Part shown: one piece after another, positions 8,686 through 62,439 of the stretch
Layout: each line of letters opens with the position of its first letter
How positions within the stretch are numbered: the stretch's first letter is position 1
Assembly: GCA_964057225.1 (NCBI GenBank)
Contig: OZ059895.1
Location: 12,958,001 to 13,022,000 of the forward strand
From: Auanema rhodensis
Taxonomy: Eukaryota > Animalia > Nematoda
DNA: 64,000 nt
Direction of reading: 5' to 3'
Program-made: the position numbers and the translations under genes
Notes under the pieces: model-generated
The model's database searches: none
What the model was told of the DNA's origin: nothing
The model's input: only the letters and a program-made list of their open reading frames with translations

Positions 8686-8731
8686 GCTTACGACCATACC
8701 ACGTTGAAAGTACGCCATCCCGTCCGATCTG
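8686..8731 (+). pseudogene. 5S gene nt 1-46, interrupted by the Maverick (remainder nt 41-119 at 25262-25340)
   Basis: 5S sequence stops at GATCTG (8726-8731) and resumes with GATCTG at 25262-25267. Confidence 0.95.
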
Positions 8732-9572
8732 AGTAGAGAGCCGTGCAAAATTTACTAACCACGCCCCCAAACAGCTGTCAAAAACATACTTTTGGGGGCG
8801 TCAGCTGCTAAAAACATACTTTTGGGGCGCGTCAGCTGTCAAAAACATATTTTTGAGCGTCAGCTGTTAAAATCATATTTTAGGATCATGGTTCATGGAT
8901 TTTCCTTTTTTAAATATAAAAGTCATGATTTAAAGCATGATTTTTTTTTTTGATTTTTTTTTTAATCAAATTTTAAATTTGTTTATTCAAATGTATGTAT
9001 ATAGTTTTAATTATTTTTAAATATATTAAGTAAAAATAAAAATTATAAATTTTAAATATTTAAATATTTAAATATGTAAATTTGTTTTTTAAATTTTATT
9101 TATTTATTAATAATGTTTGTTTACTTATTTTGTTTATTTTTCATTGTATTGTGTTTGTATTGTTTTTATTTTAAAGAACAGTAAAATTTTTGCATGTATA
9201 TCGTTTTGTTCACCGTACTTGTTACGGGTAATTCAATGGAACACATATCGAAGGTTAATTCGATAAGAACGATATGAAATACAAAATTTAATGGAACACA
9301 TATCGAAGGTTAATTCGATAAGAACGATATAAAATACCAAAATTTAATGGAACACATATCGAAAGTTAATTCGATAAGAACGACATTAAATTATTAATTT
9401 TTGAAATTGCAAATTGTTATTAATTATATTCATTCTAACAAGTAAAGGTTTCAAATTATAATAAAAGATTAGTTTTAAACTTTATTTTACTAATATAACA
9501 ATACAATAACTAAATAGAGCACACATTGAAGGTAAATACAATAAGATTAACAAACAGTTGCGCTGACCTCAA
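8732..9572 (+). repeat. Maverick left terminal inverted repeat
   Basis: Reverse complement of 23265-24251. Contains ~30-bp CAGCTG-bearing subrepeats and three ~55-bp subrepeats. Confidence 0.92.
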
Positions 9573-9779
9573 TGAAACGCATAAAGTTAATTTAATAAGA
9601 ACTAATAACAAAAATTAATCCGACGGGGACAATAAAAACAGATGTATTCAATAAGCTTATTTATTTTAAAGTTCATCGCAACTGCTAGTTTTGACAGCTG
9701 TACCCAAATCCATGTTACATAACAAATTACAATGCCAACAGCAATGTGTAGACTGATATATTCATTATATCAAGGTACA

Positions 9780-12700
9780 ATGGCTGCTAATAGGTTGTGT
9801 CTTTTTGTTTATTTGTTTGTAAACTTTTTCTTTTTTCAGTTATAAACGTTTATGTGAAGAGCTAGGATTTGATTATGAAGAGATTAATCAGCTCAGGTAA
9901 TTTAACAATATTTTGAATCTTTATATATATTTTGTTTTTTAGTAAACGTATAAAGTTTACCGAGGCTGGTGGGATCGAGCTCTGTGAGCCCACATCACCC
10001 ACTTTTAACAGTGGGCCCTCATCATCAAGGGTTATTGAAGTAATAACCTTGGATGACAGTGATGAGTAAGCGATATTAAAAATTATAACAATTAGTTTTT
10101 TTCTTTTTAAGAGAATGGGATCCCGCTACCCCATCAACCAGTGGAGGGCAAGTCGGATATGGAGCGGCTTTCAACGATGTCTGTAAAATAGAGGTGCGAT
10201 CTTTTATTTACATATCATTTCATAATATATCTTTTGAAACATGAAATTTTCTCTTGCTCCAATTGCATATTTTGAAAACATTTTGAAATTTATTTCTCTT
10301 CTTCAATTGCATTCATAAAATTCTCTCTCTCTCATCTTTACATTTCATCTCAATCTATATCTTTTATCAAACAAATTGCAAGTATTTTGAAACTTATATA
10401 TTCATTCTTTTGAACAGCATTCATTTTAAAATCTTTACATTTCATCTCACTATATATCTTTCTTTCAACCAATTTTGAATTCTTACAAATTATAAATATT
10501 TCAAACATTTTGAACTAGTAAAATAATAAAACACCATCTTGACCTTTCCATTTATTTTTAAACATTAACAAATGTTTATAAAAGAAAAAACTTTATATTT
10601 AAAAATCAAATGCCATTTATTTTTAATAAAAGAATATAAAAATAATTTAAAGAAAAGTAAATTTATTAAAAGTTATAAACAAAAATTATTTATATTTAAA
10701 CTAAATATCTAAACTAAATAACCATTATAAAAAGTGTGTATTATAGTGGTCACACCGACGCATAAAACGCACTGGTCGGTTTACCAACGTGGTCGTTAGA
10801 TCGCTCACGTTCCCACATTTGGAAAACATTAATGAGCCAATGCATGTTGTCATGCCGCGGCTATTTAATGAGTTCCTTGATCGGTGCCTTGCTGAAAGTG
10901 GTGTGCCAGATAAACAAAAAGCACTATTTTGTTTATCAATAGAGCACCCATCCTTTGAAAAGGGATCCATATTTATGGATTTCCGTAGAAGGGAGCATTT
11001 GGATGGCGTTGCCATCATGAAGGTACAGCAATCAAAGCGAGAGGCTGTAATTAGCCAGGCAATGAATATTGAAATGTATGTGTTTGATGAGAGACCAGTG
11101 CAGCCAAGCCTGATGCCTGGTGAAGGTAGAGTTGGTTTCTATTTTGATGCCGAACTCAAAATACCTGGCACAATTGAGAACACTGATACACATTGCCTGG
11201 CTAGAGCAGCAGTTGTGGGAATGTGGAAAGCCGATGAAGAGGCAGCAGAAGATGTAATTGAGAAGCGGAGGATTCAAAATCTTCGTCGCAACTACATCTT
11301 GTTGCCAAATCAACCACATCATATCAATTTATTGAATAGGTGTGGTATTTCTGTACATTTACCAAATTATAATTTGAACCATTTAAATATTATTGCAAGT
11401 TGTAATACAGACTATAAGTTTGTAGTATACGCTAGGCCACCTGGACAGCGTATGTACGCTATTCAGCGTATCTTTAATGAAACGGCTAGCAAAGTGGTAA
11501 CACTAGGCTACCGAAATAATCATTATGACTGTATTACTACTTGTAGTAGATCACAGGTTTTTGATGGTATTATATGCCAACACTGTAAATTATCTTACAA
11601 AACAGTGTTGCATAGATGTAAAGCCAAGTGTAAGAAATGCCACACCTTAAAATGTAATTCGATGGAAAATGTGGTTGAGAGTAGCATAAGATGTAATAGT
11701 TGTAGAGTTTTGTTCAAAACTCGTCAATGCTTTGACAGGCATATTAGAAAAACATGTCGAATGTTTAAGGTAATTTAAAAAATATATATAAAATTTAACA
11801 TGACTAAATTCAGACATGTGAAAACTGTGATCATTATCACAGGGTGCGTGCTGATAGACCGCACAATTGCAATGAGAAATTTTGCAAAAAGTGTGGGCAA
11901 ACAAAGCCTGAAGATCACTCTTGTTGTTGGGTACCACCTAACGACAAGAAGAAGGATCAGTTAAAAAAGAGGCAAGAGAAATACAAGGTTTGTATTTAAC
12001 ATCTTTACAAGTGTAATACTTACTTGTTTAAGATTATATTCTATGACTTTGAAACGGTTGTGTTAAAAAGCGGTACAAATGTTCATGAATATGCAGATGA
12101 ACAATGGCCCAATATGGTTGTGTATAATAAATTTTGTGAAAGTTGTATAGACGCCAATTCATGCGAAAAATGCACAACCAAGGAGGGCCATTTTGGGTAC
12201 CAACAAGGTGATAGTGAATGGTCTGTAACAGATCGTTTCCTTGATTGGTTACTCAACTCTGTTGAGAATGATAATGCAATTTTGATTGCGCATAATGGTT
12301 CACGCTTTGACATACATTTCTTGGTGTCTAGGCTGATAAACCGTGGAATATATCCTGATCCAATTTTAAATGGGACCAAGATTATAAGCATGGTTGTCAA
12401 GCCTTTAAGAGGTCAAAAATTTAATCATTTATATTTTAAAGATAGTTATTTATTAGTGCCTTTACCCCTATCAGCGTTACCCAAGGCATTTGGTGTACCT
12501 GATATGAGTAAAGGACAGTTTCCTTACCTCTATAATCACCCAATAAATTATGGCAAAGTGTTGCCATCTTTACCACCAAAACAGTACTATTGTACTGCTA
12601 GAATGAAAGCAGAAGACCTAGCTTCATTCGATATTTGGTATGAAGAGCGTAATCAAAGAGCGTTTGATTTTGATGAAGAGCTTTTGGAATATTGTAGGAC

Positions 12701-14961
12701 AGATGTCCGTATTTTAACCAACTGTATGAAAGTTTACATGAAGTTGGCAACCGCCACCACTGGCTGGAACCCTGTCATACAATGTATGACATTTGCCAGT
12801 TTCTCTTTATTCCAGGCAAGTTTTTTAAAATACAAGCATTTTCAAAACTATTATATTACAGTTGAAAATGAACCACATTAAAGAGAACCAAGTGGGTATT
12901 CTGCCCGAGACTGGTTATTATGCCGGTCAAAAGCAGAGTATAATAGCCATAAAGTATATAAAATGGCTAGAACAAGGATTGGGCCGCCCATTAATGCATA
13001 AGCTTAATGGTGGTGAATTTGCAGTGAGAGTAGATGGCCATCGCTATCTACTCGATGCTTATGACCCCGTTGCCAATCATGGCTATGAGGTGAGTAATTT
13101 GTAATAAATGTAAAAAGTGCAAATTTTTGTAGATTAATGGTTGTATTTACCATGGTTGCCCCCAGTGCACCAACAAGAGCGCTATAGCACCAGGCAGAAA
13201 TGGTGAAACAATGGAAGAGGTAATTGTGACTTTTTTAATCATTTTAATTTTTAAAATTTAGGTTTATGATAAAACCATGAAAAGGCTTGAAGCAATTCAA
13301 AGCCAAGGCATTGGTGTTACCACAGTGTGGGAGCACGAAATTAATGCACAAATTTCGGCCAATGAAGAAATGGCGAAATTTATGCGTGAAACAAATGTTG
13401 TTACACGCTTGGCACCTAGAGATGCCTTTACCGGTGGCCGCACCCAGACATATAAGCTTTTGGCACAAGCTTCGGATAGATACTCGCTCGAGTATGTGGA
13501 CTTTTGTTCACTATATCCATATGTCACCGCTTTTGATGCCTATTACCCTGTAGGTAATCCCAAAGTTATTACTGAGGGTTTCAAAAGCTTTGAGACATGT
13601 TGCCCATACAAGGGGCTAGTAAAATGTGACGTGCTTGCACCCACAAATTTGCTGTACCCTGTATTAGGCACACGTATTGGCGGTAAACTTATTTTTACAA
13701 ACTGCCGCACTTGTGCAGTCAAAAGTAAAAATGTAACATGTGAGCACCAGAATGATGTAAATGCTAGAAAGCTGCATCTAACCGTGACACATGTTGAGCT
13801 CGAGTGTGCCATACAACGTGGCTATAAAGTGCTTAATGTGCATGAGGTGTGGCACTGGGAAGAATGGCAACAAGGAGGCCTGTTTAAAGAGTTTGTACAA
13901 AAGTACATAAAAATTAAACAAGAGGCGTCGGGCTGGCCAAAGCCAAACATGACAGAGGAAGAAAAGGTATGTTTTAACAAAAGTATCACATTAAATAGAA
14001 TTTTACAGGTGATTTATCTCCAAGAGCACGAGGAGAACACTGGTGTTGCTCTGGAGAGCAATAAAATTGAGAAGAATGCTGCCATGCGTAGCATTGCCAA
14101 ACTGCAGCTAAATAGGTTTGTAAACTTTTTAAAACAATACATTACAAATTTGCTTATAGTGTCTGGGGTAAAATGGGTCAAAGACCTGATAAAGCCCAAA
14201 CCAAGATTATTGGTGTTGAGGACCCAGAAATTGGTAGGATCATTACTGATCCTGCAAGGGAACTCACTGGGTTCAAAATTGTGGATAATGTTGCGTACTG
14301 CACAACAGTACCAGAGGATTCACATTTGGCGCCACCGCCTTTTACAAATGTAGCTATTGCGGCCTATACAACCGCTCATGCAAGGCTACTATTGTATAAG
14401 GCGATGGAGAAAATTGGAAAGAATTTGGTGTATACAGGTAATTTTATACTTTGTATTCAATTTAAACTTACATTATTTAGACACGGATTCTCTAATTTAT
14501 CAAAGGTGCCTAGATGAGCCAGATCCAATTGAGGATATGAAGGGTGAATGGTTAGGTAAACTAACCTCTGAAATACCCGATGGTTGGTCAATGACCAAGT
14601 TTGTATCACCAGCGGCAAAAGTTTATAGCTATAAACTTGTAAATGCAGCTGGTGATGTAAAATATGTAACAAAGGCAAAGGGAGTGGTAAGAACGAGCTT
14701 TGACTTTTCAAAAAATTTTATAATTTACAGACGTTGGACCACACGGCAGCATCAGTGGTAAACTTTGAAAGTATGGAGCGACTGGTTCGCGGACTCGTTA
14801 TGGATGGAGAGAAATTGGTTTTAAAAACCAATACGACATTGTTAAAGAGGCAACTCGGTGCCATATCCACAATGGATATGACAAAAAGTACTAGAGTTGT
14901 AATGGATAAACTTTGTTATCTACAAGATTATAGTACTTTACCCTACGGTTATTGTGTTTAA
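9780..14961 (+). CDS. Protein-primed family B DNA polymerase (pPolB), spliced, 14 exons
   Basis: Joining GT(GC)-AG exons by hand gives one continuous frame. Motifs seen: ExoI IIFYDFET, ExoII AHNGSRFD, ExoIII YCRTDV, VSR-like insert EINGCIYHGC, AFTGGRT, motif A DFCSLYP, motif B KLQLNSVWGK, motif C YTDTDS and C-terminal TLPYGY. Approximate introns: 9794-9839, 9897-9942, 10066-10111, 10193-10746, 11770-11813, 11988-12032, 12816-12861, 13090-13132, 13220-13261, 13967-14008, 14115-14159, 14438-14480, 14687-14730. An alternative in-frame ATG lies at 9732. Confidence 0.92.
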
Positions 14962-15096
14962 TATATTTGAATTTATAAATTTTTATCTTGTATATATTTG
15001 TATTTATAAAATTTTATCATTGTACATGTATATTTTTAAAAATAGTTGTATTAATAAATTTTATTCTTAAATCTTTTAAAGAATTTATTACATACA

Positions 15097-16431
15097 TTAC
15101 AAACTGGTATCAATATATGGAGCACGATTGTTGTCAATTGAAAGAATAGAGTCATACTCTGCATAAACAATTGCATATAAGCCCTCTTGCGGCGTTTGTT
15201 GACCAAATTCCAATTTCAAGGCTACATTACCTTGTCGTATAACATCAAATAACTCTGACGAATGCACAGTAGGAGAAATATCAAATACAAAAAATGTGAA
15301 ACCAGCTTTATACATTGCTGGTGTAATACCATTGGATGTATCTGTACGACCAAGTCCCAAACCTTCGAGCATGTCAATATATGCTGTGGCATAGGAAGAT
15401 CGCCATTCTAAATTATAAGGACGGGTAGGTATTACCCTATTGTTGAGCGTCAAGTATATATTTTTCAAATCAAACGGTTTAAAGTTGAATGGCGAATGTT
15501 TAAAAGTACCATTATAAGCGTGTGCGCCAACAAGACCTACTACGACACGTTTTGGTGTATGAGACGTGAATAATATATTATTAGGTGAATCCAAGCGGCC
15601 TCCTTCTATGAAATAAGAGGGCATTTTCACTGATGTCATGGGGTAGTGTATTCGATCCTTTGCGAGTTTATCTTCTATAGCCATAGCTAATCCAGCGTTT
15701 AGATCAAACTCTTGAATGAGCAAATGTACATCGCTGATATCTACTTTCAAATTTGGAAACTCCTCCTTTAATGTAGTATCCTTGTTTTCATTATTCCAGC
15801 CTAGAGTGTCAATTAAAAAGTTATCACGGTTTGGATATGCAGTTAGCTCCATTTTTGAATAGTTTACAAACAGTCGCTCTTGATTAAATAGGTCGATACT
15901 GACGGGAGCAGCCATCTCACACAATATGCCATTTTTTACAAGCGCTTGACGCGTTCTAAATCCAGCACTGGATGCATTATCTATATATCTATCAGCATAA
16001 TATCCTGATATGGCAAGTTTGCTCTCTTTAACATCGTTGCTATACATTAAAATATTCTCGATATATGTTTTATAGGCATGATTCACGGTAGAGTCATACA
16101 CGCTAACATCGCCAATTTTCAAATGATACGAATGTATTAAACTGGCAGCAAATTGTTGACATGGTGCAAAAATAAGGTTGTCTGGTACTGGATCACCGTT
16201 TGTGGTTACAATTTTAAATTTTACATTCAACCAACATCTTCTCAGATTGAGGAATGATTTGGAATTTTGAGCTATAACAAATTCCCATGGTCCTTGAGGA
16301 AGAAAAGTATTTTTCAAAGGGACTTGTACAGTACGAGTAGACTCTACACCTAATGCCGACGCAGGTATATCACCATAGTTGATATTAGGTAAAAGGGCTT
16401 GTGCTGATTTTGAATCTATCAATTTAGCCAT
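15097..16431 (-). CDS. Maverick major capsid protein (double jelly-roll, PY)
   Basis: 444-aa intronless ORF with typical Polinton MCP motifs (PKRVVVGLV, AYNG...PFNFKPF, GFTFFVFDISP, YAEYDSIL.ID..R). Confidence 0.88.
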   Translation of the reverse strand: MAKLIDSKSAQALLPNINYGDIPASALGVESTRTVQVPLKNTFLPQGPWEFVIAQNSKSFLNLRRCWLNVKFKIVTTNGDPVPDNLIFAPCQQFAASLIHSYHLKIGDVSVYDSTVNHAYKTYIENILMYSNDVKESKLAISGYYADRYIDNASSAGFRTRQALVKNGILCEMAAPVSIDLFNQERLFVNYSKMELTAYPNRDNFLIDTLGWNNENKDTTLKEEFPNLKVDISDVHLLIQEFDLNAGLAMAIEDKLAKDRIHYPMTSVKMPSYFIEGGRLDSPNNILFTSHTPKRVVVGLVGAHAYNGTFKHSPFNFKPFDLKNIYLTLNNRVIPTRPYNLEWRSSYATAYIDMLEGLGLGRTDTSNGITPAMYKAGFTFFVFDISPTVHSSELFDVIRQGNVALKLEFGQQTPQEGLYAIVYAEYDSILSIDNNRAPYIDTSL

Positions 16432-16884
16432 TTAAATGTGAAACGACCGCTCACGAGTGATGCACAACCGCTTATGAGGTTTTGTGGTTTTGCGTCGTCG
16501 CCGTTTGCCCAAGCCGGTAAGATCTCGTATAGCTTGCCGGCCGGCTGTTTTAAGAGTTTCCTTGATATTATCGCCTTTCAGCACCCCATCGACAATTTCA
16601 TTACCAGTTTTCAGCAACTGTCCGCCAAGAGGTGAATTTACAACTGGACTATTGCTTACAGCACTGGATAAGGCGTTTCTTCCGGCATTGATGAGATTTT
16701 GGGCTATAGGTGATTGAATGATGCGTGGTAGAAATGATGCCAAAGTTGCCAAAATACCACCCAAACCATGACCCCTCTGCATTCCACGTTGAAACATCAT
16801 TCCGCTAAATGGGGCGCCACCCATTTGTTGATTTAAAAGTGTTGTCCATTGAATAGAGTTGACATCCAAAAGGAGGTGCGGCAT
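16432..16884 (-). CDS. Small Gly-rich/basic virion core protein (Polinton PW/Wasp-type; adenovirus pVI/pX-like organisation)
   Basis: Contains QMGG, QRGHGLGG, an amphipathic helix and a basic tail LTGLG-KRRRR. It abuts the MCP start; first ATG at 16884. Confidence 0.7.
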   Translation of the reverse strand: MPHLLLDVNSIQWTTLLNQQMGGAPFSGMMFQRGMQRGHGLGGILATLASFLPRIIQSPIAQNLINAGRNALSSAVSNSPVVNSPLGGQLLKTGNEIVDGVLKGDNIKETLKTAGRQAIRDLTGLGKRRRRKTTKPHKRLCITRERSFHI

Positions 16885-16935
16885 ATCGAACCGCACGCGC
16901 GCAATACAAAAGTTACACTAGATCATTCTACTAAA

Positions 16936-17391
16936 ATGTATTCGTCTGAAATAGTATCACTATTGCAATCTGTCCCCAGCACTCGGAAACTATTCCTCGG
17001 TGTATATAGCGCTGATACTCTACCCAAAACGCGTCGTAAAAACTTTGCACTTGTCGTAAATACTGACACACATGATAAGCCAGGCACACATTGGCAGGTC
17101 ATCTTTGTCCGTAACAAGCAAGCCTATTTTTTCTGTAGCTTGGGATATAAAATGAACAAGTACATTCAAAATTATCTGGCCAAATATAAAAAGGTAAAAA
17201 TTAATACTTGCAAACCACAACGTTTAATTGAATACACTTGTGGTGGCTATGTGGTATTTGTAATACTAATGTTGTCGGCTGGTAATTCATTTGAAAGCAT
17301 TTGTTCATTTTTTAAACTATTGAAAAATGATGATGTCTTTATTAAAGCGTTTATGCATAAAGTATTCGACTATAAATTGGCTACTATATAA
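16936..17391 (+). CDS. Adenain-like (C5) cysteine protease
   Basis: VVNTD...PGTHW (catalytic His) and PQ.....TCGGY (oxyanion Gln, catalytic Cys); first ATG at 16936. Confidence 0.88.
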   Translation: MYSSEIVSLLQSVPSTRKLFLGVYSADTLPKTRRKNFALVVNTDTHDKPGTHWQVIFVRNKQAYFFCSLGYKMNKYIQNYLAKYKKVKINTCKPQRLIEYTCGGYVVFVILMLSAGNSFESICSFFKLLKNDDVFIKAFMHKVFDYKLATI

Positions 17392-17432
17392 GAAATTTGT
17401 CATTAATAACCTGCTACATTACGTGGTCAGTT

Positions 17433-17603
17433 ATGAATATTCCTTGTCACTGTGAATTATGTGTCAAATACACGTTGGAGCAATCTAAACCAGCGCCTTT
17501 ATACAGGAGAATGTTGAAATGTATTTCAGTGCCATTTATTAAAGGTATAGCATTGGGATTGGGCTTTTGTACAACACTAGTCATATTATTGCTCATTATA
17601 TAA
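17433..17603 (+). CDS. Small predicted tail-anchored membrane protein (56 aa)
   Basis: ATG 17433, a CxCxxC motif and a C-terminal hydrophobic helix GIALGLGFCTTLVILLLII. It fills the gap between the protease and zinc-finger genes. Confidence 0.45.
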   Translation: MNIPCHCELCVKYTLEQSKPAPLYRRMLKCISVPFIKGIALGLGFCTTLVILLLII

Positions 17604-17644
17604 AAGTGGGTTGATTGCGTGTGGTCGTTTTTCATTTTCCTCTA

Positions 17645-18109
17645 ATGGAACTTTTATGTAACAAATATTGTGGTACATGCAAGGAAATATTTTCTTCAAC
17701 CAAGCATTTTAGTGATCACGTTTTGAAAAGACATGCAGGGATTCAACCCATATGTAACAATTATATCAGCAATGCTGACTTTATTCAAAAATATGGACAT
17801 TTGGATGGTGTTCGTAGACGTTTGTGCCCTCATTGTAGTGAAACTTTTGGAACAAGATTCAATTGTGAGCGTCATATTCGGCGTATTCATAATAATAATG
17901 GAACGAATGGTGAAGATGGTGATGGAAATGATACCAGCAAACCCTTTGAAAAAGCTGAGGAGTTTGTACATTCAACCCAATCAAAAAGATGCCGCAGCAA
18001 TAGTGACGGAGAACATTCACAACACGAGCCGAGCGACAAACAAAACTGCCCTAAACTATCTTTTAAACCTTCGAAAATAAAAATGTGGTATTGTATAACT
18101 GTTGAATAA
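17645..18109 (+). CDS. C2H2 zinc-finger protein
   Basis: Two fingers, CGTCKEIFSSTKHFSDHVLKRH and CPHCSETFGTRFNCERHIRRIH; ATG 17645. Confidence 0.75.
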   Translation: MELLCNKYCGTCKEIFSSTKHFSDHVLKRHAGIQPICNNYISNADFIQKYGHLDGVRRRLCPHCSETFGTRFNCERHIRRIHNNNGTNGEDGDGNDTSKPFEKAEEFVHSTQSKRCRSNSDGEHSQHEPSDKQNCPKLSFKPSKIKMWYCITVE

Positions 18110-18114
18110 AGCGT

Positions 18115-18972
18115 TTATTTCATATTTTTAACATGCAATGTAACAACTGTAGAACCATAATTAAATTGCATAGGACGACCAAATTCATCTAAAATTTCAA
18201 TACGTATGGTATCGAGTGTTTGTCTAGTGATTGGTACATAACGAATAGGATTAAATGTTTTGGCAATCATTTTACCAAATTCAGTAGGAGGTGGTACAGG
18301 TAAACATGCAAGTAAATTAGCTTTCACATTACCAAGAATGGAATATTCTACAATATCACAATATATATACATTGTATTAATGTTATTTGAAAAATCAATG
18401 GGACGCCTGGCTATTATTGTATCGTTGATGTTTTTATTTTCAAAACCAAGAAAATATGCAAAATCATCACCAAGCGTTGCATTCAACAATAGTCGCTTGC
18501 TTGTTACAAACTCTATGCGCTGCAATGTTTTGTTAAACTGAAATGTGGCATCTGCGAGCATTTCTTCCACTAGCTTAGCCTCAGCCTGGCGATTATTATA
18601 CCATTTTTTTACATCTTCATCTTTATCTATTAAACTTTTTATACGTGCTTCTTCCTCAGCTCCAAGAGGCTTTGTATTGTTGGCGATAAATGATTCTCTT
18701 CCAGCATTGATTCCGCGTATTATTTCATCACCATTTGCATAGTTGCCTTTAGGCAAGTGTAGAATAAATTTTCTATTGGAAAAACGTAGTGTATAAGATA
18801 AATCTTTTTGAACATTTAATATAGAACAAGGAAAAATGATGTCTGTCAGCCCAATGCAATATCTATTATTGCGTAGCCTTAGTGTTTCAGGTAATCTGGT
18901 AAGAAATACTGATGATGTATTACTTTTTTCAGAGTCAACTGATGATGGAAGAGTAATGTAAAAATCATCCAT
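18115..18972 (-). CDS. Maverick minor capsid protein (penton, PX)
   Basis: N-terminal FYITLPS...F.T.LP....L....Y.IGL.DI.FP and C-terminal MYIYCDIVE....G...ANLL...P.RYVP.....DTIRIEI.DEFG.P..F, typical of Polinton mCP. Confidence 0.88.
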   Translation of the reverse strand: MDDFYITLPSSVDSEKSNTSSVFLTRLPETLRLRNNRYCIGLTDIIFPCSILNVQKDLSYTLRFSNRKFILHLPKGNYANGDEIIRGINAGRESFIANNTKPLGAEEEARIKSLIDKDEDVKKWYNNRQAEAKLVEEMLADATFQFNKTLQRIEFVTSKRLLLNATLGDDFAYFLGFENKNINDTIIARRPIDFSNNINTMYIYCDIVEYSILGNVKANLLACLPVPPPTEFGKMIAKTFNPIRYVPITRQTLDTIRIEILDEFGRPMQFNYGSTVVTLHVKNMK

Positions 18973-19051
18973 GACAAACCACCACTTGATACGTGTACAC
19001 TATTGCAAATGAAATCATTTGCATTTTAGGTACATTTACGAGTGGTTGATT

Positions 19052-19699
19052 ATGGTTTTCAGCTTCAAACTACCCAGTCAGACAACTGTAATAGGTGCTA
19101 CCCAATGCGGTAAAACAACCCTCATAAAGCACATATGTGAAAATACTGAAAAGTTTTTCAACGTCCCCATTGATAGAATATTCTGGTTCAGTCAATGTGG
19201 GTCATCGTCAGGTGTACCAATAAATGATGAGCGTTTAATAATTATTCAAGGGCCTCCTGATCCTGATTTGATAAAAGAACAAAAGGGAGTAAATACTATA
19301 CTAGTGCTGGATGATTTGATGAACTTTTTTTCATCGAATAAAGCAGCAAAGGAATTACTCAACAACATTTTTACAGTATGGGCTCATCACTGGAATTTGG
19401 CAGTGTTTAATCTTGTGCAAGCGGCATTTCAACTGGACAGGACCAGTCGAATCAATAGTACATATATAATACTGATGAAAAGTCATTCAGATATATTACA
19501 AATACGTAATTGTCTGCAGCAATTATTTGGGCCACGTTTCAAAAATGCTCTAGAGGCGTATGATGATGCAATGTCTACTCCCTATAGTCATTTACTGATT
19601 GACAATCATCCTTTAACAAGTGAGAAGCAGCGTATACTATCTGATATAACAGCGGAGAACCCTATTGTTTATGTTGCCAGAAATGTGTTTAGTGTTTAA
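19052..19699 (+). CDS. Genome-packaging ATPase (A32/FtsK-like)
   Basis: Walker A GATQCGKTT, Walker B LVLDDLM, HH...LVQ and SRINSTY; ATG 19052. Confidence 0.9.
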   Translation: MVFSFKLPSQTTVIGATQCGKTTLIKHICENTEKFFNVPIDRIFWFSQCGSSSGVPINDERLIIIQGPPDPDLIKEQKGVNTILVLDDLMNFFSSNKAAKELLNNIFTVWAHHWNLAVFNLVQAAFQLDRTSRINSTYIILMKSHSDILQIRNCLQQLFGPRFKNALEAYDDAMSTPYSHLLIDNHPLTSEKQRILSDITAENPIVYVARNVFSV

Positions 19700-19711
19700 A
19701 GTGCTTGTTCA

Positions 19712-21757: not shown

Positions 21758-22050
21758 TTTTTCAATGTTATAAACAATTGTAATTATAATAAATGATTTA
21801 TTTGATATATCGCATAATGTAACAATAAAAAACCAGCAAAATACAAACAACAATTCAACCTGGAAAAAAAAAATGTAGACTATTCAAATTTTCAAATTCT
21901 TACCAGTTGGTTGATCATTCGTCCTCAATTGATGAGCCATTGATGGATATTCGCAAGAGCTGGAAAAAAAATGTTACGGCTGAGAATATAAAAATGCCAC
22001 ATAACAAAACAAGAATAAAACGCCAATTGTACTATTTGTGCTTGTTGTAG

Positions 22051-51100: not shown

Positions 51101-52257
51101 TCAATAATTTTTTCCTTGCCTTGTACGATCATATGAATCTAAAACAAAAATTAATTGTAAATCTTAAATAAACAAAACACCTCTTTGGTGAGATCCATAT
51201 CGGGTTTCTTACAGCGGATGGTTCTGTAAGTAAATTCGGCACAATCATCCTTGGAGCAAAGGATGTATTGCCCGTCAACCAGTTTACAACCTCTGGAAGA
51301 GGTCTTGTTGTTAATAGCAGGCAGACCATTGCCTCCTGAAACAAACTATATATAGAAACTTGAAAATATAAAACTAACCTTTTCTGTTCCATGGAGTGAA
51401 GATATCCCGAGTAATATCCTTGTAGACAATGAATTGTCTTTTTGAAATTCTAAAAAAAATTTTACCCTGATGCATGCCCAATAAATCAGGCATGCAATCA
51501 AGAACAGCAATGCTGTTATCGAAAAGGAGTTCAAAAGCATTCATAGTTGAAAGGTTTAGGTGAGCGTTAAACGTGAAGTTTAAAATTGGTTTGATTAAAT
51601 CAAATTATTTTTTATGTTCATGATGATGTTCACAATTTTTGTTTTTTTATGAACTATATATGACGCTCAATTGTCATCCAATTGATGGTAGGTGTCATTA
51701 ATATGGTATACCGGAGGGTTCAACACGCGTTATAATGAACTTATGTTACATTTTTCTTAAATATGAACAATATTTTTAACACTTATAAGACAATCTTGTC
51801 AAATATTAATATTTATTTTATTAATAAGTTCTATATCAGTCTAGATAAAACATTTTAGAAATTTCATTCAAGGTTCTTTGATAATAGATTCTATTTCAGT
51901 TTACAAGAATTTTGAGATTAGGATGATTTAGATTTTGACTTTTCTTACTATATCTTTTTAAAACTTATACTTTTAAATTTACTCATCAATCATTTGAAAA
52001 AAAACTTACATTTTCACATCTTTATCATATTTGTTTCTTATACCTGAAAACTTCTTCAAAATACTCAAAACTTTTTTTAATCTATTTTGTTTAATTTGGT
52101 ATACTTGGTAAACCTTGCAAAGTGTTCACAAATTAATATTGGGTATACTTTGGTAAACCTGGTAAACCTGGTATACCATATAACTATGGTAAACTTGTCT
52201 ATTTCTTGGTAAACCTAGTTTGGTAAACCTAAAGTTTGGTAAACTTGTCAGTTTACC
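48120..52257 (-). mobile_element. Mutator/MULE DNA transposon (4,138 bp)
   Basis: 165-bp TIRs (48120-48284 and 52093-52257, ~2 mismatches, many GTTTACCA motifs), a 9-bp TSD CTAACCGGG and a MULE transposase gene. Confidence 0.92.
48684..51540 (-). CDS. MULE DDE transposase with SWIM-type zinc finger, multi-exon (start uncertain)
   Basis: Spliced exons give IMIDTTF (D1), LCHDGEDAF (D2), RCSVH (CxxH), STNLLESKNFQLK (E) and C...C...LCQHRLAV (SWIM-like). Confidence 0.82.
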
Positions 52258-53940
52258 CTAACCGGGCCCAACGTTGCTTGACTTGCCAGATCGGACGGGA
52301 TGGCGTACTTTCAACGTGGTATGGTCGTAAGCGAAAATATCTGATATTCAATGATTTACATACTTATCCTCGTTATGGTTTTTTTTCCAATTTCATGTTA
52401 GTTATGTAATTTTCTACGTTACATCTGAATCCCTCGATGATATCAAATCTTATGAGATCCAAATACAATAAATTAAAAAAGGTTTCACAGTTGTATAGTG
52501 TTTAAACAATGTTTGTTTCAATAGGAAATAGATAGAAACAGTAAAGTTAAGATGAAGGTTCATAAACTACTGGTTTATAACTGTAATATAGAAATAAGAT
52601 TGAAGATATTTTGATGCCTTGGGTTGAGCTATCTAAGTAAAACTGCTGGAAAATTAAAAACATTTGTTACGGAAGAGATAAAATTGAAAATCAGCTGCAT
52701 GGCGTACTTTCAACGTGGTATGGTCGTAAGCGAAAAAATCTGATATTCAATGATTTACATACTTATCCTCGTTATTGTTTTTTTTCCAATTTCATGTTAG
52801 TTATGTAATTTTCTACGTTACATCTAAATTCCTCGATGATATCAAATCTTATGAGCTCCAAATACAATAAATTAAAAAAGGTTTCACAGTTGTATAGTGT
52901 TAAAACAATGTTTGTTTCAATAGGAAATAGATAGAAACAGTGAAGTTAAGATGAAGGTTCATAAACTACTGGTTTATAACTGTAATATAGAAATAAGATT
53001 GAAGATATTTTGATGCCTTGGGTTGAGCTATCTAAGTAAAACTGCTGGAAAATTAAAAACATTTGTTACGGAAGAAATAAAATTGAAAATCAGCTGCATG
53101 GCGTACTTTCAACGTGGTATGGTCGTAAGCGAAAAAATCTGATATTCAATGATTTACATACTTATCCTCGTTATTGTTTTTTTTTTCAATTTCATGTTAG
53201 TTATGTAATTTTCTACGTTACATCTAAATTCCTCGATGATATCAAATCTTATGAGCTCCAAATACAATAAATTAAAAAAGGTTTCACAGTTGTATAGTGT
53301 TAAACAATGTTTGTTTCAATAGGAAATAGATAGAAACAGTAAAGTTAAGATGAACGTTCATAAACTACTGGTTTATAACTGTAATATAAAAATAAGATTG
53401 AAGATATTTTGATGCCTTGGGTTGAGCTATCTAAGTAAAACTGCTGGAAAATTAAAAACATTTGTTACGGAAGAGATAAAATTGAAAATCAGCTGCATGG
53501 CGTACTTTCAACGTGGTATGGTCGTAAGCGAAAAAATCTGATATTCAATGATTTACATACTTATCCTCGTTATTGTTTTTTTTTTCAATTTCATGTTAGT
53601 TATGTAATTTTCTACGTTACATCTAAATTCCTCGATGATATCAAATCTTATGAGCTCCAAATACAATAAATTAAAAAAGGTTTCACAGTTGTATAGTGTT
53701 AAAACAATGTTTGTTTCAATAGGAAATAGATAGAAACAGTAAAGTTAAGATGAAGGTTCATAAACTACTGGTTTATAACTGTAATATAAAAATAAGATTG
53801 AAGATATTTTGATGCCTTGGGTTGAGCTATCTAAGTAAAACTGCTGGAAAATTAAAAACATTTGTTACGGAAGAGATAAAATTGAAAATCAGCTGCATTG
53901 CGTACTTTCAACGTGGTATGATCGTTAAAAAATTTTGAAA

Positions 53941-54059
53941 AGCTTACGGCACCCGGGATTCCCAAGCCGTCTCCGATCCAAGTACTAACCGGGCCCAACG
54001 TTGCTTGACTTGCCAGATCGGACGGGATGGCGTACTTTCAACGTGGTATGGTCGTAAGC
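53941..54059 (-). rRNA. 5S rRNA
   Basis: Full copy on -. Confidence 0.95.
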
Positions 54060-57000
54060 GAAAAAATCTGATATTCAATGATTTACATAATTATCCTCGT
54101 TATTGTTTTTTTTCCAATTTCATGTTAGTTATGTAATTTTCTACGTTACATCTGAATCCCTCGATGATATCAAATCTTATGAGATCCAAATACAATAAAT
54201 TAAAAAAGGTTTCACAGTTGTATAGTGTTTAAACAATGTTTGTTTCAATAGGAAATAGATAGAAACAGTAAAGTTAAGATGAAGGTTCATAAACTACTGG
54301 TTTATAACTGTAATATAGAAATAAGATTGAAGATATTTTGATGCCTTGGGTTGAGCTATCTAAGTAAAACTGCTGGAAAATTAAAAACATTTGTTACGGA
54401 AGAGATAAAATTGAAAATCAGCTGCATGGCGTACTTTCAACGTGGTATGGTCGTAAGCGAAAAAATCTGATATTCAATGATTTACATACTTATCCTCGTT
54501 ATTGTTTTTTTTCCAATTTCATGTTAGTTATGTAATTTTCTACGTTACATCTAAATTCCTCGATGATATCAAATCTTATGAGCTCCAAATACAATAAATT
54601 AAAAAAGGTTTCACAGTTGTATAGTGTTAAAACAATGTTTGTTTCAATAGGAAATAGATAGAAACAGTGAAGTTAAGATGAAGGTTCATAAACTACTGGT
54701 TTATAACTGTAATATAGAAATAAGATTGAAGATATTTTGATGCCTTGGGTTGAGCTATCTAAGTAAAACTGCTGGAAAATTAAAAACATTTGTTACGGAA
54801 GAAATAAAATTGAAAATCAGCTGCATGGCGTACTTTCAACGTGGTATGGTCGTAAGCGAAAAAATCTGATATTCAATGATTTACATACTTATCCTCGTTA
54901 TTGTTTTTTTTCCAATTTCATGTTAGTTATGTAATTTTCTACGTTACATCTGAATCCCTCGATGATATCAAATCTTATGAGATCCAAATACAATAAATTA
55001 AAAAAGGTTTCACAGTTGTATAGTGTTTAAACAATGTTTGTTTCAATAGGAAATAGATAGAAACAGTAAAGTTAAGATGAAGGTTCATAAACTACTGGTT
55101 TATAACTGTAATATAGAAATAAGATTGAAGATATTTTGATGCCTTGGGTTGAGCTATCTAAGTAAAACTGCTGGAAAATTAAAAACATTTGTTACGGAAG
55201 AAATAAAATTGAAAATCAGCTGCATGGCGTACTTTCAACGTGGTATGGTCGTAAGCGAAAAAATCTGATATTCAATGATTTACATACTTATCCTCGTTAT
55301 TGTTTTTTTTCCAATTTCATGTTAGTTATGTAATTTTCTACGTTACATCTAAATTCCTCAATGATATCAAATCTTATGAGCTCCAAATACAATAAATTAA
55401 AAAAGGTTTCACAGTTGTATAGTGTTTAAACAATGTTTGTTTCAATAGGAAATAGATAGAAACAGTAAAGTTAAGATGAAGGTTCATAAACTACTGGTTT
55501 ATAACTGTAATATAGAAATAAGATTGAAGATATTTTGATGCCTTGGGTTGAGCTATCTAAGTAAAACTGCTGGAAAATTAAAAACATTTGTTACGGAAGA
55601 GATAAAATTGAAAATCAGCTGCATGGCGTACTTTCAACGTGGTATGGTCGTAAGCGAAAAAATCTGATATTCAATGATTTACATACTTATCCTCGTTATT
55701 GTTTTTTTTCCAATTTCATGTTAGTTATGTAATTTTCTACGTTACATCTAAATTCCTCAATGATATCAAATCTTATGAGCTCCAAATACAATAAATTAAA
55801 AAAGGTTTCACAGTTGTATAGTGTTAAAACAATGTTTGTTTCAATAGGAAATAGATAGAAACAGTGAAGTTAAGATGAAGGTTCATAAACTACTGGTTTA
55901 TAACTGTAATATAGAAATAAGATTGAAGATATTTTGATGCCTTGGGTTGAGCTATCTAAGTAAAACTGCTGGAAAATTAAAAACATTTGTTACGGAAGAA
56001 ATAAAATTGAAAATCAGCTGCATGGCGTACTTTCAACGTGGTATGGTCGTAAGCGAAAAAATCTGATATTCAATGATTTACATACTTTTCCTCGTTATTG
56101 TTTTTTTTTCAATTTCATGTTAGTTATGTAATTTTCTACGTTACATCTAAATTCCTCGATGATATCAAATCTTATGAGCTCCAAATACAATAAATTAAAA
56201 AAGGTTTCACAGTTGTATAGTGTTAAACAATGTTTGTTTCAATAGGAAATAGATAGAAACAGTAAAGTTAAGATGAACGTTCATAAACTACTGGTTTATA
56301 ACTGTAATATAAAAATAAGATTGAAGATATTTTGATGCCTTGGGTTGAGCTATCTAAGTAAAACTGCTGGAAAATTAAAAACATTTGTTACGGAAGAGAT
56401 AAAATTGAAAATCAGCTGCATGGCGTACTTTCAACGTGGTATGGTCGTAAGCGAAAAAATCTGATATTCAATGATTTACATACTTATCCTCGTTATTGTT
56501 TTTTTTTTCAATTTCATGTTAGTTATGTAATTTTCTACGTTACATCTAAATTCCTCGATGATATCAAATCTTATGAGCTCCAAATACAATAAATTAAAAA
56601 AGGTTTCACAGTTGTATAGTGTTAAACAATGTTTGTTTCAATAGGAAATAGATAGAAACAGTAAAGTTAAGATGAAGGTTCATAAACTACTGGTTTATAA
56701 CTGTAATATAGAAATAAGATTGAAGATATTTTGATGCCTTGGGTTGAGCTATCTAAGTAAAACTGCTGGAAAATTAAAAACATTTGTTACGGAAGAGATA
56801 AAATTGAAAATCAGCTGCATGGCGTACTTTCAACGTGGTATGGTCGTAAGCGAAAAAATCTGATATTCAATGATTTACATACTTATCCTCGTTATTGTTT
56901 TTTTTCCAATTTCATGTTAGTTATGTAATTTTCTACGTTACATCTAAATTCCTCGATGATATCAAATCTTATGAGCTCCAAATACAATAAATTAAAAAAG

Positions 57001-59256
57001 GTTTCACAGTTGTATAGTGTTAAAACAATGTTTGTTTCAATAGGAAATAGATAGAAACAGTGAAGTTAAGATGAAGGTTCATAAACTACTGGTTTATAAC
57101 TGTAATATAGAAATAAGATTGAAGATATTTTGATGCCTTGGGTTGAGCTATCTAAGTAAAACTGCTGGAAAATTAAAAACATTTGTTACGGAAGAAATAA
57201 AATTGAAAATCAGCTGCATGGCGTACTTTCAACGTGGTATGGTCGTAAGCGAAAAAATCTGATATTCAATGATTTACATACTTATCCTCGTTATTGTTTT
57301 TTTTCCAATTTCATGTTAGTTATGTAATTTTCTACGTTACATCTGAATCCCTCGATGATATCAAATCTTATGAGATCCAAATACAATAAATTAAAAAAGG
57401 TTTCACAGTTGTATAGTGTTTAAACAATGTTTGTTTCAATAGGAAATAGATAGAAACAGTAAAGTTAAGATGAAGGTTCATAAACTACTGGTTTATAACT
57501 GTAATATAGAAATAAGATTGAAGATATTTTGATGCCTTGGGTTGAGCTATCTAAGTAAAACTGCTGGAAAATTAAAAACATTTGTTACGGAAGAAATAAA
57601 ATTGAAAATCAGCTGCATGGCGTACTTTCAACGTGGTATGGTCGTAAGCGAAAAAATCTGATATTCAATGATTTACATACTTATCCTCGTTATTGTTTTT
57701 TTTCCAATTTCATGTTAGTTATGTAATTTTCTACGTTACATCTAAATTCCTCAATGATATCAAATCTTATGAGCTCCAAATACAATAAATTAAAAAAGGT
57801 TTCACAGTTGTATAGTGTTTAAACAATGTTTGTTTCAATAGGAAATAGATAGAAACAGTAAAGTTAAGATGAAGGTTCATAAACTACTGGTTTATAACTG
57901 TAATATAGAAATAAGATTGAAGATATTTTGATGCCTTGGGTTGAGCTATCTAAGTAAAACTGCTGGAAAATTAAAAACATTTGTTACGGAAGAGATAAAA
58001 TTGAAAATCAGCTGCATGGCGTACTTTCAACGTGGTATGGTCGTAAGCGAAAAAATCTGATATTCAATGATTTACATACTTATCCTCGTTATTGTTTTTT
58101 TTCCAATTTCATGTTAGTTATGTAATTTTCTACGTTACATCTAAATTCCTCAATGATATCAAATCTTATGAGCTCCAAATACAATAAATTAAAAAAGGTT
58201 TCACAGTTGTATAGTGTTAAAACAATGTTTGTTTCAATAGGAAATAGATAGAAACAGTGAAGTTAAGATGAAGGTTCATAAACTACTGGTTTATAACTGT
58301 AATATAGAAATAAGATTGAAGATATTTTGATGCCTTGGGTTGAGCTATCTAAGTAAAACTGCTGGAAAATTAAAAACATTTGTTACGGAAGAAATAAAAT
58401 TGAAAATCAGCTGCATGGCGTACTTTCAACGTGGTATGGTCGTAAGCGAAAAAATCTGATATTCAATGATTTACATACTTTTCCTCGTTATTGTTTTTTT
58501 TTCAATTTCATGTTAGTTATGTAATTTTCTACGTTACATCTAAATTCCTCGATGATATCAAATCTTATGAGCTCCAAATACAATAAATTAAAAAAGGTTT
58601 CACAGTTGTATAGTGTTAAACAATGTTTGTTTCAATAGGAAATAGATAGAAACAGTAAAGTTAAGATGAACGTTCATAAACTACTGGTTTATAACTGTAA
58701 TATAAAAATAAGATTGAAGATATTTTGATGCCTTGGGTTGAGCTATCTAAGTAAAACTGCTGGAAAATTAAAAACATTTGTTACGGAAGAGATAAAATTG
58801 AAAATCAGCTGCATGGCGTACTTTCAACGTGGTATGGTCGTAAGCGAAAAAATCTGATATTCAATGATTTACATACTTATCCTCGTTATTGTTTTTTTTT
58901 TCAATTTCATGTTAGTTATGTAATTTTCTACGTTACATCTAAATTCCTCGATGATATCAAATCTTATGAGCTCCAAATACAATAAATTAAAAAAGGTTTC
59001 ACAGTTGTATAGTGTTAAAACAATGTTTGTTTCAATAGGAAATAGATAGAAACAGTAAAGTTAAGATGAAGGTTCATAAACTACTGGTTTATAACTGTAA
59101 TATAAAAATAAGATTGAAGATATTTTGATGCCTTGGGTTGAGCTATCTAAGTAAAACTGCTGGAAAATTAAAAACATTTGTTACGGAAGAGATAAAATTG
59201 AAAATCAGCTGCATTGCGTACTTTCAACGTGGTATGATCGTTAAAAAAATTTGAAA

Positions 59257-59375
59257 AGCTTACGGCACCCGGGTTTTCCAAGCCGTCTCCGATCCAAGTA
59301 CTAACCGGGCCCAACGTTGCTTGACTTGCCAGATCGGACGGGATGGCGTACTTTCAACGTGGTATGGTCGTAAGC
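59257..59375 (-). rRNA. 5S rRNA (G99A/T102A variant)
   Basis: Full-length copy on -. Confidence 0.9.
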
Positions 59376-60584
59376 GAAAATACCTGATATTCAATGATTT
59401 ACATACTTATCCTCGTTATTGTTTTTTTTTTCAATTTCATGTTAGTTATGTAATTTTCTACGTTACATCTAAATTCCTCGATGATATCAAATCTTATGAG
59501 CTCCAAATACAATAAATTAAAAAAGGTTTCACAGTTGTATAGTGTTAAAACAATGTTTGTTTCAATAGGAAATAGATAGAAACAGTGAAGTTAAGATGAA
59601 GGTTCATAAACTACTGGTTTATAACTGTAATATAGAAATAAGATTGAAGATATTTTGATGCCTTGGGTTGAGCTATCTAAGTAAAACTGCTGGAAAATTA
59701 AAAACATTTGTTACGGAAGAAATAAAATTGAAAATCAGCTGCATGGCGTACTTTCAACGTGGTATGGTCGTAAGCGAAAAAATCTGATATTCAATGATTT
59801 ACATACTTTTCCTCGTTATTGTTTTTTTTTCAATTTCATGTTAGTTATGTAATTTTCTACGTTACATCTAAATTCCTCGATGATATCAAATCTTATGAGC
59901 TCCAAATACAATAAATTAAAAAAGGTTTCACAGTTGTATAGTGTTAAACAATGTTTGTTTCAATAGGAAATAGATAGAAACAGTAAAGTTAAGATGAACG
60001 TTCATAAACTACTGGTTTATAACTGTAATATAAAAATAAGATTGAAGATATTTTGTTGCCTTGGGTTGAGCTATCTAAGTAAAACTGCTGGAAAATTAAA
60101 AACATTTGTTACGGAAGAGATAAAATTGAAAATCAGCTGCATGGCGTACTTTCAACGTGGTATGGTCGTAAGCGAAAAAATCTGATATTCAATGATTTAC
60201 ATACTTATCCTCGTTATTGTTTTTTTTTTCAATTTCATGTTAGTTATGTAATTTTCTACGTTACATCTAAATTCCTCGATGATATCAAATCTTATGAGCT
60301 CCAAATACAATAAATTAAAAAAGGTTTCACAGTTGTATAGTGTTAAAACAATGTTTGTTTCAATAGGAAATAGATAGAAACAGTAAAGTTAAGATGAAGG
60401 TTCATAAACTACTGGTTTATAACTGTAATATAAAAATAAGATTGAAGATATTTTGATGCCTTGGGTTGAGCTATCTAAGTAAAACTGCTGGAAAATTAAA
60501 AACATTTGTTACGGAAGAGATAAAATTGAAAATCAGCTGCATTGCGTACTTTCAACGTGGTATGATCGTTAAAAAAATTTGAAA

Positions 60585-60703
60585 AGCTTACGGCACCCGG
60601 GTTTTCCAAGCCGTCTCCGATCCAAGTACTAACCGGGCCCAACGTTGCTTGACTTGCCAGATCGGACGGGATGGCGTACTTTCAACGTGGTATGGTCGTA
60701 AGC
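60585..60703 (-). rRNA. 5S rRNA (G99A/T102A variant)
   Basis: Full-length copy on -. Confidence 0.9.
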
Positions 60704-61512
60704 GAAAATACCTGATATTCAATGATTTACATACTTATCCTCGTTATTGTTTTTTTTTCAATTTCATGTTAGTTATGTAATTTTCTACGTTACATCTAAA
60801 TTCCTCGATGATATCAAATCTTATGAGCTCCAAATACAATAAATTAAAAAAGGTTTCACAGTTGTATAGTGTTAAACAATGTTTGTTTCAATAGGAAATA
60901 GATAGAAACAGTAAAGTTAAGATGAACGTTCATAAACTACTGGTTTATAACTGTAATATAAAAATAAGATTGAAGATATTTTGTTGCCTTGGGTTGAGCT
61001 ATCTAAGTAAAACTGCTGGAAAATTAAAAACATTTGTTACGGAAGAGATAAAATTGAAAATCAGCTGCATGGCGTACTTTCAACGTGGTATGGTCGTAAG
61101 CGAAAAAATCTGATATTCAATGATTTACATACTTATCCTCGTTATTGTTTTTTTTTTCAATTTCATGTTAGTTATGTAATTTTCTACGTTACATCTAAAT
61201 TCCTCGATGATATCAAATCTTATGAGCTCCAAATACAATAAATTAAAAAAGGTTTCACAGTTGTATAGTGTTAAAACAATGTTTGTTTCAATAGGAAATA
61301 GATAGAAACAGTAAAGTTAAGATGAAGGTTCATAAACTACTGGTTTATAACTGTAATATAAAAATAAGATTGAAGATATTTTGATGCCTTGGGTTGAGCT
61401 ATCTAAGTAAAACTGCTGGAAAATTAAAAACATTTGTTACGGAAGAGATAAAATTGAAAATCAGCTGCATTGCGTACTTTCAACGTGGTATGATCGTTAA
61501 AAAAATTTGAAA

Positions 61513-61631
61513 AGCTTACGGCACCCGGGTTTTCCAAGCCGTCTCCGATCCAAGTACTAACCGGGCCCAACGTTGCTTGACTTGCCAGATCGGACGGGAT
61601 GGCGTACTTTCAACGTGGTATGGTCGTAAGC
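61513..61631 (-). rRNA. 5S rRNA (G99A/T102A variant)
   Basis: Full-length copy on -. Confidence 0.9.
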
Positions 61632-62041
61632 GAAAATACCTGATATTCAATGATTTACATACTTATCCTCGTTATTGTTTTTTTTTTCAATTTCATGTTA
61701 GTTATGTAATTTTCTACGTTACATCTAAATTCCTCGATGATATCAAATCTTATGAGCTCCAAATACAATAAATTAAAAAAGGTTTCACAGTTGTATAGTG
61801 TTAAAACAATGTTTGTTTCAATAGGAAATAGATAGAAACAGTAAAGTTAAGATGAAGGTTCATAAACTACTGGTTTATAACTGTAATATAAAAATAAGAT
61901 TGAAGATATTTTGATGCCTTGGGTTGAGCTATCTAAGTAAAACTGCTGGAAAATTAAAAACATTTGTTACGGAAGAGATAAAATTGAAAATCAGCTGCAT
62001 TGCGTACTTTCAACGTGGTATGATCGTTAAAAAAATTTAAA

Positions 62042-62097
62042 AGCTTACGACACCCGGGATTCCCAAGCCGTCTCCGATCCAAGTACTAACCGGGCCC
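62042..62097 (-). pseudogene. 5S gene nt 64-119, interrupted by the BEL/Pao element
   Basis: 5S match ends at CGGGCCC|TGTCG. Confidence 0.92.
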
Positions 62098-62430: not shown

Positions 62431-62439
62431 TTCCCGGCA

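Follow-up and report, generated by a model that had tools for sequence, protein, structure and literature searches.

The rules by which a mobile element chooses its target decide how much harm it does to the host, and the classic safe harbour is provided by multicopy RNA genes, where R1/R2, Dada, Mutsu and the Starships reside. Here we describe a window (the whole stretch of DNA analysed, 64,000 nucleotides of contig OZ059895.1, positions 12,958,001 to 13,022,000) from the nematode Auanema rhodensis that is a partly degenerate 5S ribosomal DNA (rDNA) array. It is interrupted by a Maverick/Polinton, a Ty3/gypsy-type block, a remnant of a BEL/Pao element and an element with terminal inverted repeats (TIRs) that is presumed to be Mutator-like. 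Junction read-out placed three of the five array-element junctions inside one 35-bp stretch of the 5S gene, as an earlier note on this DNA had claimed.

Site-specific insertion into tandem multicopy RNA-gene arrays of invertebrates, among them nematodes, is a property of NeSL-1 (Caenorhabditis elegans), R1/R2/R4 and Pokey (28S rDNA). R-elements are listed among the rDNA elements (PMC10946416). Unlike the insertions described here, these elements belong to other superfamilies and occupy other target genes, and numerous copies at the same nucleotide have proven them to be specific. A second class of precedent is formed by elements guided by RNA polymerase III (Pol III), which contact TFIIIB, TFIIIC or Pol III proteins. 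The Pol III-guided Ty3 and Ty1 of yeast and TRE5-A and DGLT-A of Dictyostelium insert outside the gene at set offsets (PMC5911963, PMC7459421, PMC5391098). The array shares with them the association with Pol III genes and the presence of gypsy-type ends upstream of 5S starts, whereas three of its five junctions lie within the gene and the upstream pair has unequal offsets (-88 and -44). By analogy, the gene-internal insertions look more like those of Dada-5S, Mutsu or Starships than like those of Pol III-guided elements.

The Dada-5S elements of ray-finned fish are DNA transposons residing inside 5S genes with short target site duplications (TSDs) (PMC8869645, PMC3706591). Insertion inside multicopy small-RNA genes and the logic of a harmless multicopy target are common to both cases. 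However, Dada specificity holds across many copies and relies on recognition of primary sequence, whereas one copy per family and no Dada-type transposase are present here; moreover, the TSDs of 6 bp, accompanied by a gene set with protein-primed B-family DNA polymerase (pPolB) and an rve integrase, and of 9 bp, accompanied by 171-nt TIRs, are indicative of a Maverick and of a Mutator-like element. Mutsu, a non-LTR (long terminal repeat) retrotransposon, is sequence-specific in zebrafish 5S genes (PMC5340908) and likewise inserts inside 5S genes of an animal, but no non-LTR element was found in the window. The nearest precedent is provided by the Starships of Pezizomycotina, in which at least five different internal 5S target sites have evolved (PMC11162782). 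There, as here, several lineages occupy different 5S-internal positions, and some Starships use a CCCG/GGGC core that is present here at nt 64-72. Unlike the present case of several superfamilies in an animal, each as a single copy, the Starships constitute one superfamily (tyrosine recombinase) in fungi, whose specificity is backed by many insertions. The safe-harbour idea and convergence on 5S genes are already known. Since Maverick, Mutator and BEL/Pao elements are all absent from the occupants of 5S genes compiled in a 2024 review on rDNA transposable elements, the insertions described below are new examples of a known association, not a new mechanism.

The 5S array and the position of its junctions

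Rfam identified 33 complete 5S rRNA genes and one partial gene in the window. The unit at window positions 7099-7627 (529 bp, with the 5S gene at unit nt 1-119) served as reference and was compared with the whole window by blastn. Unit mapping resolved 32,161 bp of array, composed of approximately 36 5S-bearing units of 529 bp or 547 bp and approximately 32 deleted units of 399 bp, and left four blocks without a match to the reference unit (8732-25261, 35664-44916, 48120-52257 and 62098-64000). Up to 35663 the array has plus orientation; between 44917 and 62097 it has minus orientation, the single flip lying in between. Its first segment (1-8731, plus strand) mixes 529/547-bp full-5S units with 399-bp units, and its last unit is cut at 5S nt 46. 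The second segment (25262-35663, plus strand) extends from 5S nt 41 to unit nt 441, the third (44917-48119, minus strand) from unit nt 485 to 5S nt 67, and the fourth (52258-62097, minus strand) consists mostly of 399-bp units and ends at 5S nt 64.

The 399-bp units (e.g. 3864-4262 and 54060-58857) derive from the 529-bp unit by deletion between a pair of 29-bp direct repeats. One repeat is 5S nt 5-33, and the other, 93% identical to it, is unit nt 135-163. The deleted units keep only the first 33 nt of the 5S sequence and have lost most of the gene, confirming that these units lack the region struck by the gene-internal insertions. With a GC content of 53-62% compared to 23-35% in the spacer, the 5S gene is the sole GC-rich island of an AT-rich unit; local GC was 0.57-0.62 at the three gene sites and 0.29 at the two spacer sites. 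The 5S gene is also the only RNA family of the window: no tRNA genes were detected within it, and neither SL1 nor another RNA family was found in the spacer.

Reading out the junction sequences showed that all five coordinates given by the earlier note were exact. The Maverick is flanked on both sides by its TSD GATCTG, corresponding to 5S nt 41-46 (left copy 8726-8731, right copy 25262-25267), and the TIR element by a 9-bp TSD at 5S nt 67-75. At the BEL/Pao remnant the minus-strand array stops at nt 64, in agreement with the proposed junction at nt 63/64, but array sequence is present on one side only. On the left, the gypsy block adjoins unit nt 441, which is 88 bp ahead of the following 5S start; on the right, it meets the inverted array at unit nt 485, at 44 bp ahead of a 5S start. 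All five junctions consequently fall within a 163-bp arc from -88 to +75 relative to the 5S start, and unit mapping of the window revealed no further interruption in the rest of the spacer.

Under a uniform model this clustering proved to be real and nominally non-random. The location of three out of three events in the 5S gene, which makes up 13.2% of the array bases, gave P = 0.0023, and a uniform scan for three events within 35 bp anywhere in the unit gave P = 0.014. The same three events considered within nt 34-119 (9.6% of the array bases) yielded P = 0.0009, and the two fully verified insertions (2/2) P = 0.009 to 0.03. The five junctions in the 163-bp arc reached P = 0.055, and the two gypsy junctions taken alone were not significant. 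All these P values are post hoc, the window having been selected by a scan of many windows and patterns. In one window and with one copy per family, clustering within 35 bp hints at targeting. However, when the null model for nt 34-119 took base composition into account, P rose to 0.005 with sites weighted in proportion to local GC, to 0.021 with weights proportional to GC squared, to 0.15 when only sites with local GC of at least 0.45 were admitted, and to 0.43 with a threshold of at least 0.5. A shared preference for the only GC-rich DNA of the repeat would account for the clustering as well as targeting does.

Some further features of the array were noted. A 2004-bp block (529+547+529+399) occurs twice in tandem at 2259-6266, and a periodicity of six units is apparent at 54858-58857 when the 399-bp units are compared by their identity values. 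The 18 bp by which the 547-bp units exceed the reference were considered as a transposon footprint and rejected, as they represent a simple tandem duplication. At window position 1407/1408, unit nt 484 is joined to nt 220 beside an A8 run; this breakpoint coincides with the position of the right gypsy junction (485), and the A8-run spot near unit nt 484 may be fragile.

Identity of the interrupting elements

The block at 8732-25261 (plus strand, 16,530 bp) was confirmed as a Maverick/Polinton. Hallmarks of this group are long TIRs, a TSD of 5-8 bp and a size of 13-25 kb (PMC10748475); the block has TIRs of at least 0.8 kb, whose outermost 129 nt are 100% complementary, a 6-bp TSD and a length of 16.5 kb. 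It encodes a pPolB at 12024-14353 (plus strand; Pfam DNA_pol_B_2, E 9e-23 and 3e-16, 81 and 60 bits vs a cut-off of 25.8), whose homology is split over two reading frames, implying at least one interruption by an intron or a break. A retroviral-type integrase, which in Mavericks often includes a chromodomain, is encoded at 20639-21757 (plus strand) and combines an rve core (35.6 bits) with a C-terminal chromodomain (Chromo, 33.7 bits), both above cut-off in Pfam. Weak Pfam matches below cut-off mark a possible adenovirus-type cysteine protease at 16849-17391 (plus strand; Peptidase_C5, E 0.0014) and a possible packaging ATPase at 19019-19699 (plus strand; ATPase_2/AAA_14, P-loop only). As the termini are perfect and the TSD is intact, the insertion appears to be recent.

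Chromoviral chromodomains read repressive histone marks. By analogy, the chromodomain of the Maverick integrase would offer a possible chromatin-reading route into the partly dead array, rather than a Pol III route.

The capsid module of Mavericks consists of a double jelly-roll major capsid protein, an adenain-like protease and a packaging ATPase; apart from the two weak matches to the enzymes, no capsid gene was confirmed, as a 444-aa open reading frame (ORF) gave no match in a PDB sequence search and a single-sequence AlphaFold (AF2) model of it reached a pLDDT of only 32. Additional features of this element include a weak C2H2 zinc-finger match below cut-off in the ORF at 17615-18109. The right end contains approximately 2.5 tandem copies of a segment of approximately 580 bp (23669-25134). 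Because of this tandem repetition, the outermost 128 nt of the TIR recur internally twice with 100% identity (24124-24251 and 24703-24830). Tandem repeats of 56 bp are present in both TIRs (9230-9391 and 23446-23663).

The 4.1-kb block at 48120-52257 carries 171-nt TIRs that are 98% identical and rich in short GGTTTACC-type subrepeats. Its TSD, CTAACCGGG (48111-48119 and 52258-52266), is the reverse complement of 5S nt 67-75. With a TSD of 9 bp and TIRs of 171 nt, it has the structure expected of a Mutator-like element (MULE), for which a TSD of 9-11 bp and TIRs of at least 100 bp are typical. The name MULE had been given to this block together with a TSD at nt 67-75; the 9-bp duplication is indeed present on both sides, but the name finds neither a transposase nor homologues behind it. 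A Pfam search of ten ORF pieces at E <= 1 retrieved no transposase domain, including MULE and Transposase_mut, and the largest ORF piece had no homologue in a word-indexed search and no exact gene on record. From structure alone, the block is presumed to be a Mutator-like element, at best a non-autonomous one. A Merlin-type element, characterized by a TSD of 8-9 bp, is an alternative. When the 20-nt TIR terminus was searched against public metagenome contigs, two matches were obtained, neither on a contig with a 5S gene. The first falls by chance in a gene for a bacterial repeat protein, and the second is doubtful; about this number is expected by chance for a 20-mer.

The block at 62098-64000 (minus strand) runs off the window, which leaves its second LTR and its TSD outside. 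Its outer approximately 330 bp are LTR-like: the end reads TGTCG... on the plus strand, which on the strand of the element gives a terminal ...ACA, and a TATA box and AATAAA lie upstream. Pfam searches of ten ORF pieces were blank throughout the block, leaving DUF1759 undetected, and a word-indexed search with a 180-aa ORF (62443-62982, minus strand) was blank as well. Relatives of this ORF were found by an exhaustive HMMER search alone, which produced 77 matches; the long ones are BEL/Pao gags or polyproteins that carry DUF1759, DUF1758, Peptidase_A17 (Pao peptidase) and RVT_1. The ORF aligns just after the DUF1759 domain of these relatives, in the zinc-knuckle part of gag, and is best described as a putative partial BEL/Pao gag comprising this part only. 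The predicted ORF together with the LTR-like end supports assignment of the block to BEL/Pao. None of the BEL/Pao pol domains (A17 protease, reverse transcriptase (RT), RNase H, integrase) was detected in 62098-64000, where 345 bp separate gag from the element end; more of the element may lie beyond the window. We also considered this block as the reciprocal product of the inversion at the gypsy block discussed below. This was rejected, since it has no sequence in common with 35664-44916 and its junction lies at 5S nt 64 rather than at unit nt 441 or thereabouts.

Two further observations concern the block and the gag relatives. Inside the remnant, the plus strand at 63341-63760 displays three short, ATG-initial exon-like pieces of paralogous appearance, bounded by ttgttgcag and gtaagc and without a family match. 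In one of the gag relatives (P0004), the predicted protein also includes a Phlebovirus G2 fusion domain, which recalls the phlebovirus-type envelope (env) of nematode BEL/Pao elements.

The block at 35664-44916 (plus strand), located between the inverted arrays, was confirmed as Ty3/gypsy by the pol domains of a single ORF of 2430 codons without a stop (37303-44595, plus strand), which scored 116 bits for RVT_1, 110 bits for RT_RNaseH and 32.6 bits for gag-asp_proteas in Pfam. The ORF comprises gag, a region resembling herpesvirus glycoprotein B (gB), protease, RT and RNase H, which would be the organization of a GAG-ENV-POL element with a gB-type env. The gB-like region matched Glycoprotein_B weakly, with 23.5-24.5 bits below the cut-off of 43, and a PDB sequence search with the middle region of the ORF gave no match. 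The closest relatives are a partial protein of Auanema sp. JU1783 (P0078, 43% identity) and a protein of Ancylostoma duodenale. These relatives point to a rhabditid nematode as the probable host. In both proteins, gag and protease are separated by a class III viral fusion-protein domain, which in P0078 scored 46 bits for Monjiviricetes_fusion (cut-off 27). Nematode Ty3/gypsy elements with a gB-type env and GAG-ENV-POL order have already been described (PMC13524379). The window copy resembles them in having gag, the gB-like region and PR-RT-RNase H in one ORF, but differs in lacking an integrase and an LTR pair and in its sub-cut-off gB match.

The ends of the block are unpaired. On the left, a 418-bp LTR-like end (35664-36081, plus strand) starts with TGTTAC, terminates in AAATGGAACG and is followed by a TGG-initial stretch that looks like a primer-binding site. 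On the right, the final 321 bp (44596-44916, plus strand) resemble the left LTR end only in their last approximately 27 nt (21/27, with the same AAATGGAACG terminus), and the rest of the right end is unlike the left. No direct repeats and thus no matching LTR pair were found in the block, nor a TSD of the 4-6 bp expected for a Ty3/gypsy element, the flanking 5 bp being different. No rve or H2C2 match was obtained in the block either; the ORF stops 42 codons past RNase H, leaving 321 bp, whereas in the Auanema relative P0078 RNase H is followed by Integrase_H2C2, an integrase zinc-binding domain. Furthermore, the flanks are inverted, with 35524-35663 and 44961-45100 being 99% complementary over 140 nt. 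Because there is no integrase, no direct repeats are present, the ends are alike over approximately 27 nt alone and the flanks are inverted, the block is not a simple insertion. Of the two Gypsy-LTR junctions described in the earlier note, the offsets of approximately 88 and 44 bp upstream of the 5S start hold, but the single insertion that they were meant to delimit does not.

The best reading of this block, we infer, is a model in which a pair of related elements, oriented oppositely to each other, inserted at spacer nt 441 and nt 485. A later illegitimate inversion would have joined the two gypsy-type elements, removing the integrase and flipping the array. Alternatively, the change of orientation at the block may represent a mis-assembly, i.e. 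an assembly join. Taken together, three of the four superfamily names proposed for the window (Maverick, Ty3/gypsy and BEL/Pao) are retained, and the fourth is presumptive.

Possible causes of the clustering at the 5S gene

With a little less than even confidence, we attribute the pattern to a tolerant array combined with a shared local insertion bias. The 5S array would act as a tolerant landing zone that keeps insertions, which persist because, with many gene copies present, the loss of a single one has no cost; no fewer than four or five independent insertion events, of three confirmed and one presumed superfamily, have been retained. The hits at 5S nt 41-75 would reflect a local insertion bias common to unrelated integration enzymes, since the 5S gene stands out in an AT-rich repeat as its sole GC-rich, and probably specially packaged, DNA. 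We infer a cause in chromatin or in base composition, and consider such a shared bias more likely than the separate evolution of four systems for Pol III tethering.

Several points weigh against this explanation. That one bias is common to three unrelated enzymes is itself an assumption. The TSD of the TIR element (nt 67-75) and the BEL junction (nt 63/64) are approximately 3 bp apart in different units, a closer spacing than expected from a broad GC preference. The two gypsy ends, being in AT-rich spacer, fall outside the GC explanation and need the tolerant-array part alone. An assembly error at the inversion is also a possible account of that part of the window.

The earlier note had proposed that each of the four families evolved targeting of the 5S/Pol III complex (TFIIIA/TFIIIC/TFIIIB) to exploit a multicopy safe harbour. 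The confinement of five junctions to the arc from -88 to +75, the location of three of them at or beside the internal control region, positioned as in Xenopus 5S, and the nominal significance under the uniform null are in line with this proposal, and convergent 5S targeting is known in fungal Starships (PMC11162782). However, each family is represented by a single copy, the P value for the five-junction arc is that of 0.055, and the GC-threshold null removes the gene-body signal. Moreover, Ty3, Ty1, TRE5-A and DGLT-A insert outside the gene, whereas three insertions here destroy it. The gypsy junctions fit no better: their offsets of -88 and -44 are unequal, the unit at the right junction is a 399-bp unit devoid of the internal promoter, and both junctions belong to a rearranged, integrase-less chimera. 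We therefore regard targeting by all four families as very improbable.

A narrower version, in which at least one family (Maverick, TIR element or BEL/Pao) recognises a specific 5S sequence, in the manner of Dada-5S, Mutsu, R-elements or 5S-targeting Starships, and the others are bystanders, is in our view unlikely. It would explain gene-internal insertions with clean TSDs and the approximately 3-bp distance between the TIR element and the BEL end, which are grouped around a GGGCCC palindrome at nt 64-69; a CCCG/GGGC core within the 5S gene also serves some Starship families (PMC11162782), and Dada-5S is proof that DNA transposons can do so. The youth of the Maverick, with the outermost 129 nt of its TIRs 100% complementary, also accords with it. 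Against this stand the single copies, the metagenome scan with the TIR terminus, which gave one chance and one doubtful match and no 5S gene, and the 2024 review of transposable elements in rDNA, which contains no site-specific Mavericks, MULEs or BEL/Pao elements. We see only a slim prospect that the window holds the first site-specific member of a superfamily, the most attractive candidates being the young chromodomain-integrase Maverick and the TIR element, with unrelated superfamilies converging on approximately 35 bp of 5S in one animal genome, as lineages of Starships have done in fungi.

Finally, uniform insertion combined with a pattern recognised post hoc in a small sample would require no bias at all. 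Just three gene-body events are involved, one of them seen from one side, the window was chosen by a scan of many windows and patterns, and the two fully verified insertions give no more than P = 0.009 to 0.03. Yet the gene body represents only 10-13% of the array bases, and the uniform-model P values range from 0.0009 to 0.014, which makes chance an improbable account.

The sample is small, though well documented. If Mavericks, Mutator-like or BEL/Pao elements do aim at 5S genes, new superfamilies would join the safe-harbour strategy, and the array would offer a naturally occurring example of convergence on one 35-bp site. If GC-rich or packaged DNA is the cause, the array would serve as a warning that clustering within a repeat unit arises without dedicated targeting.

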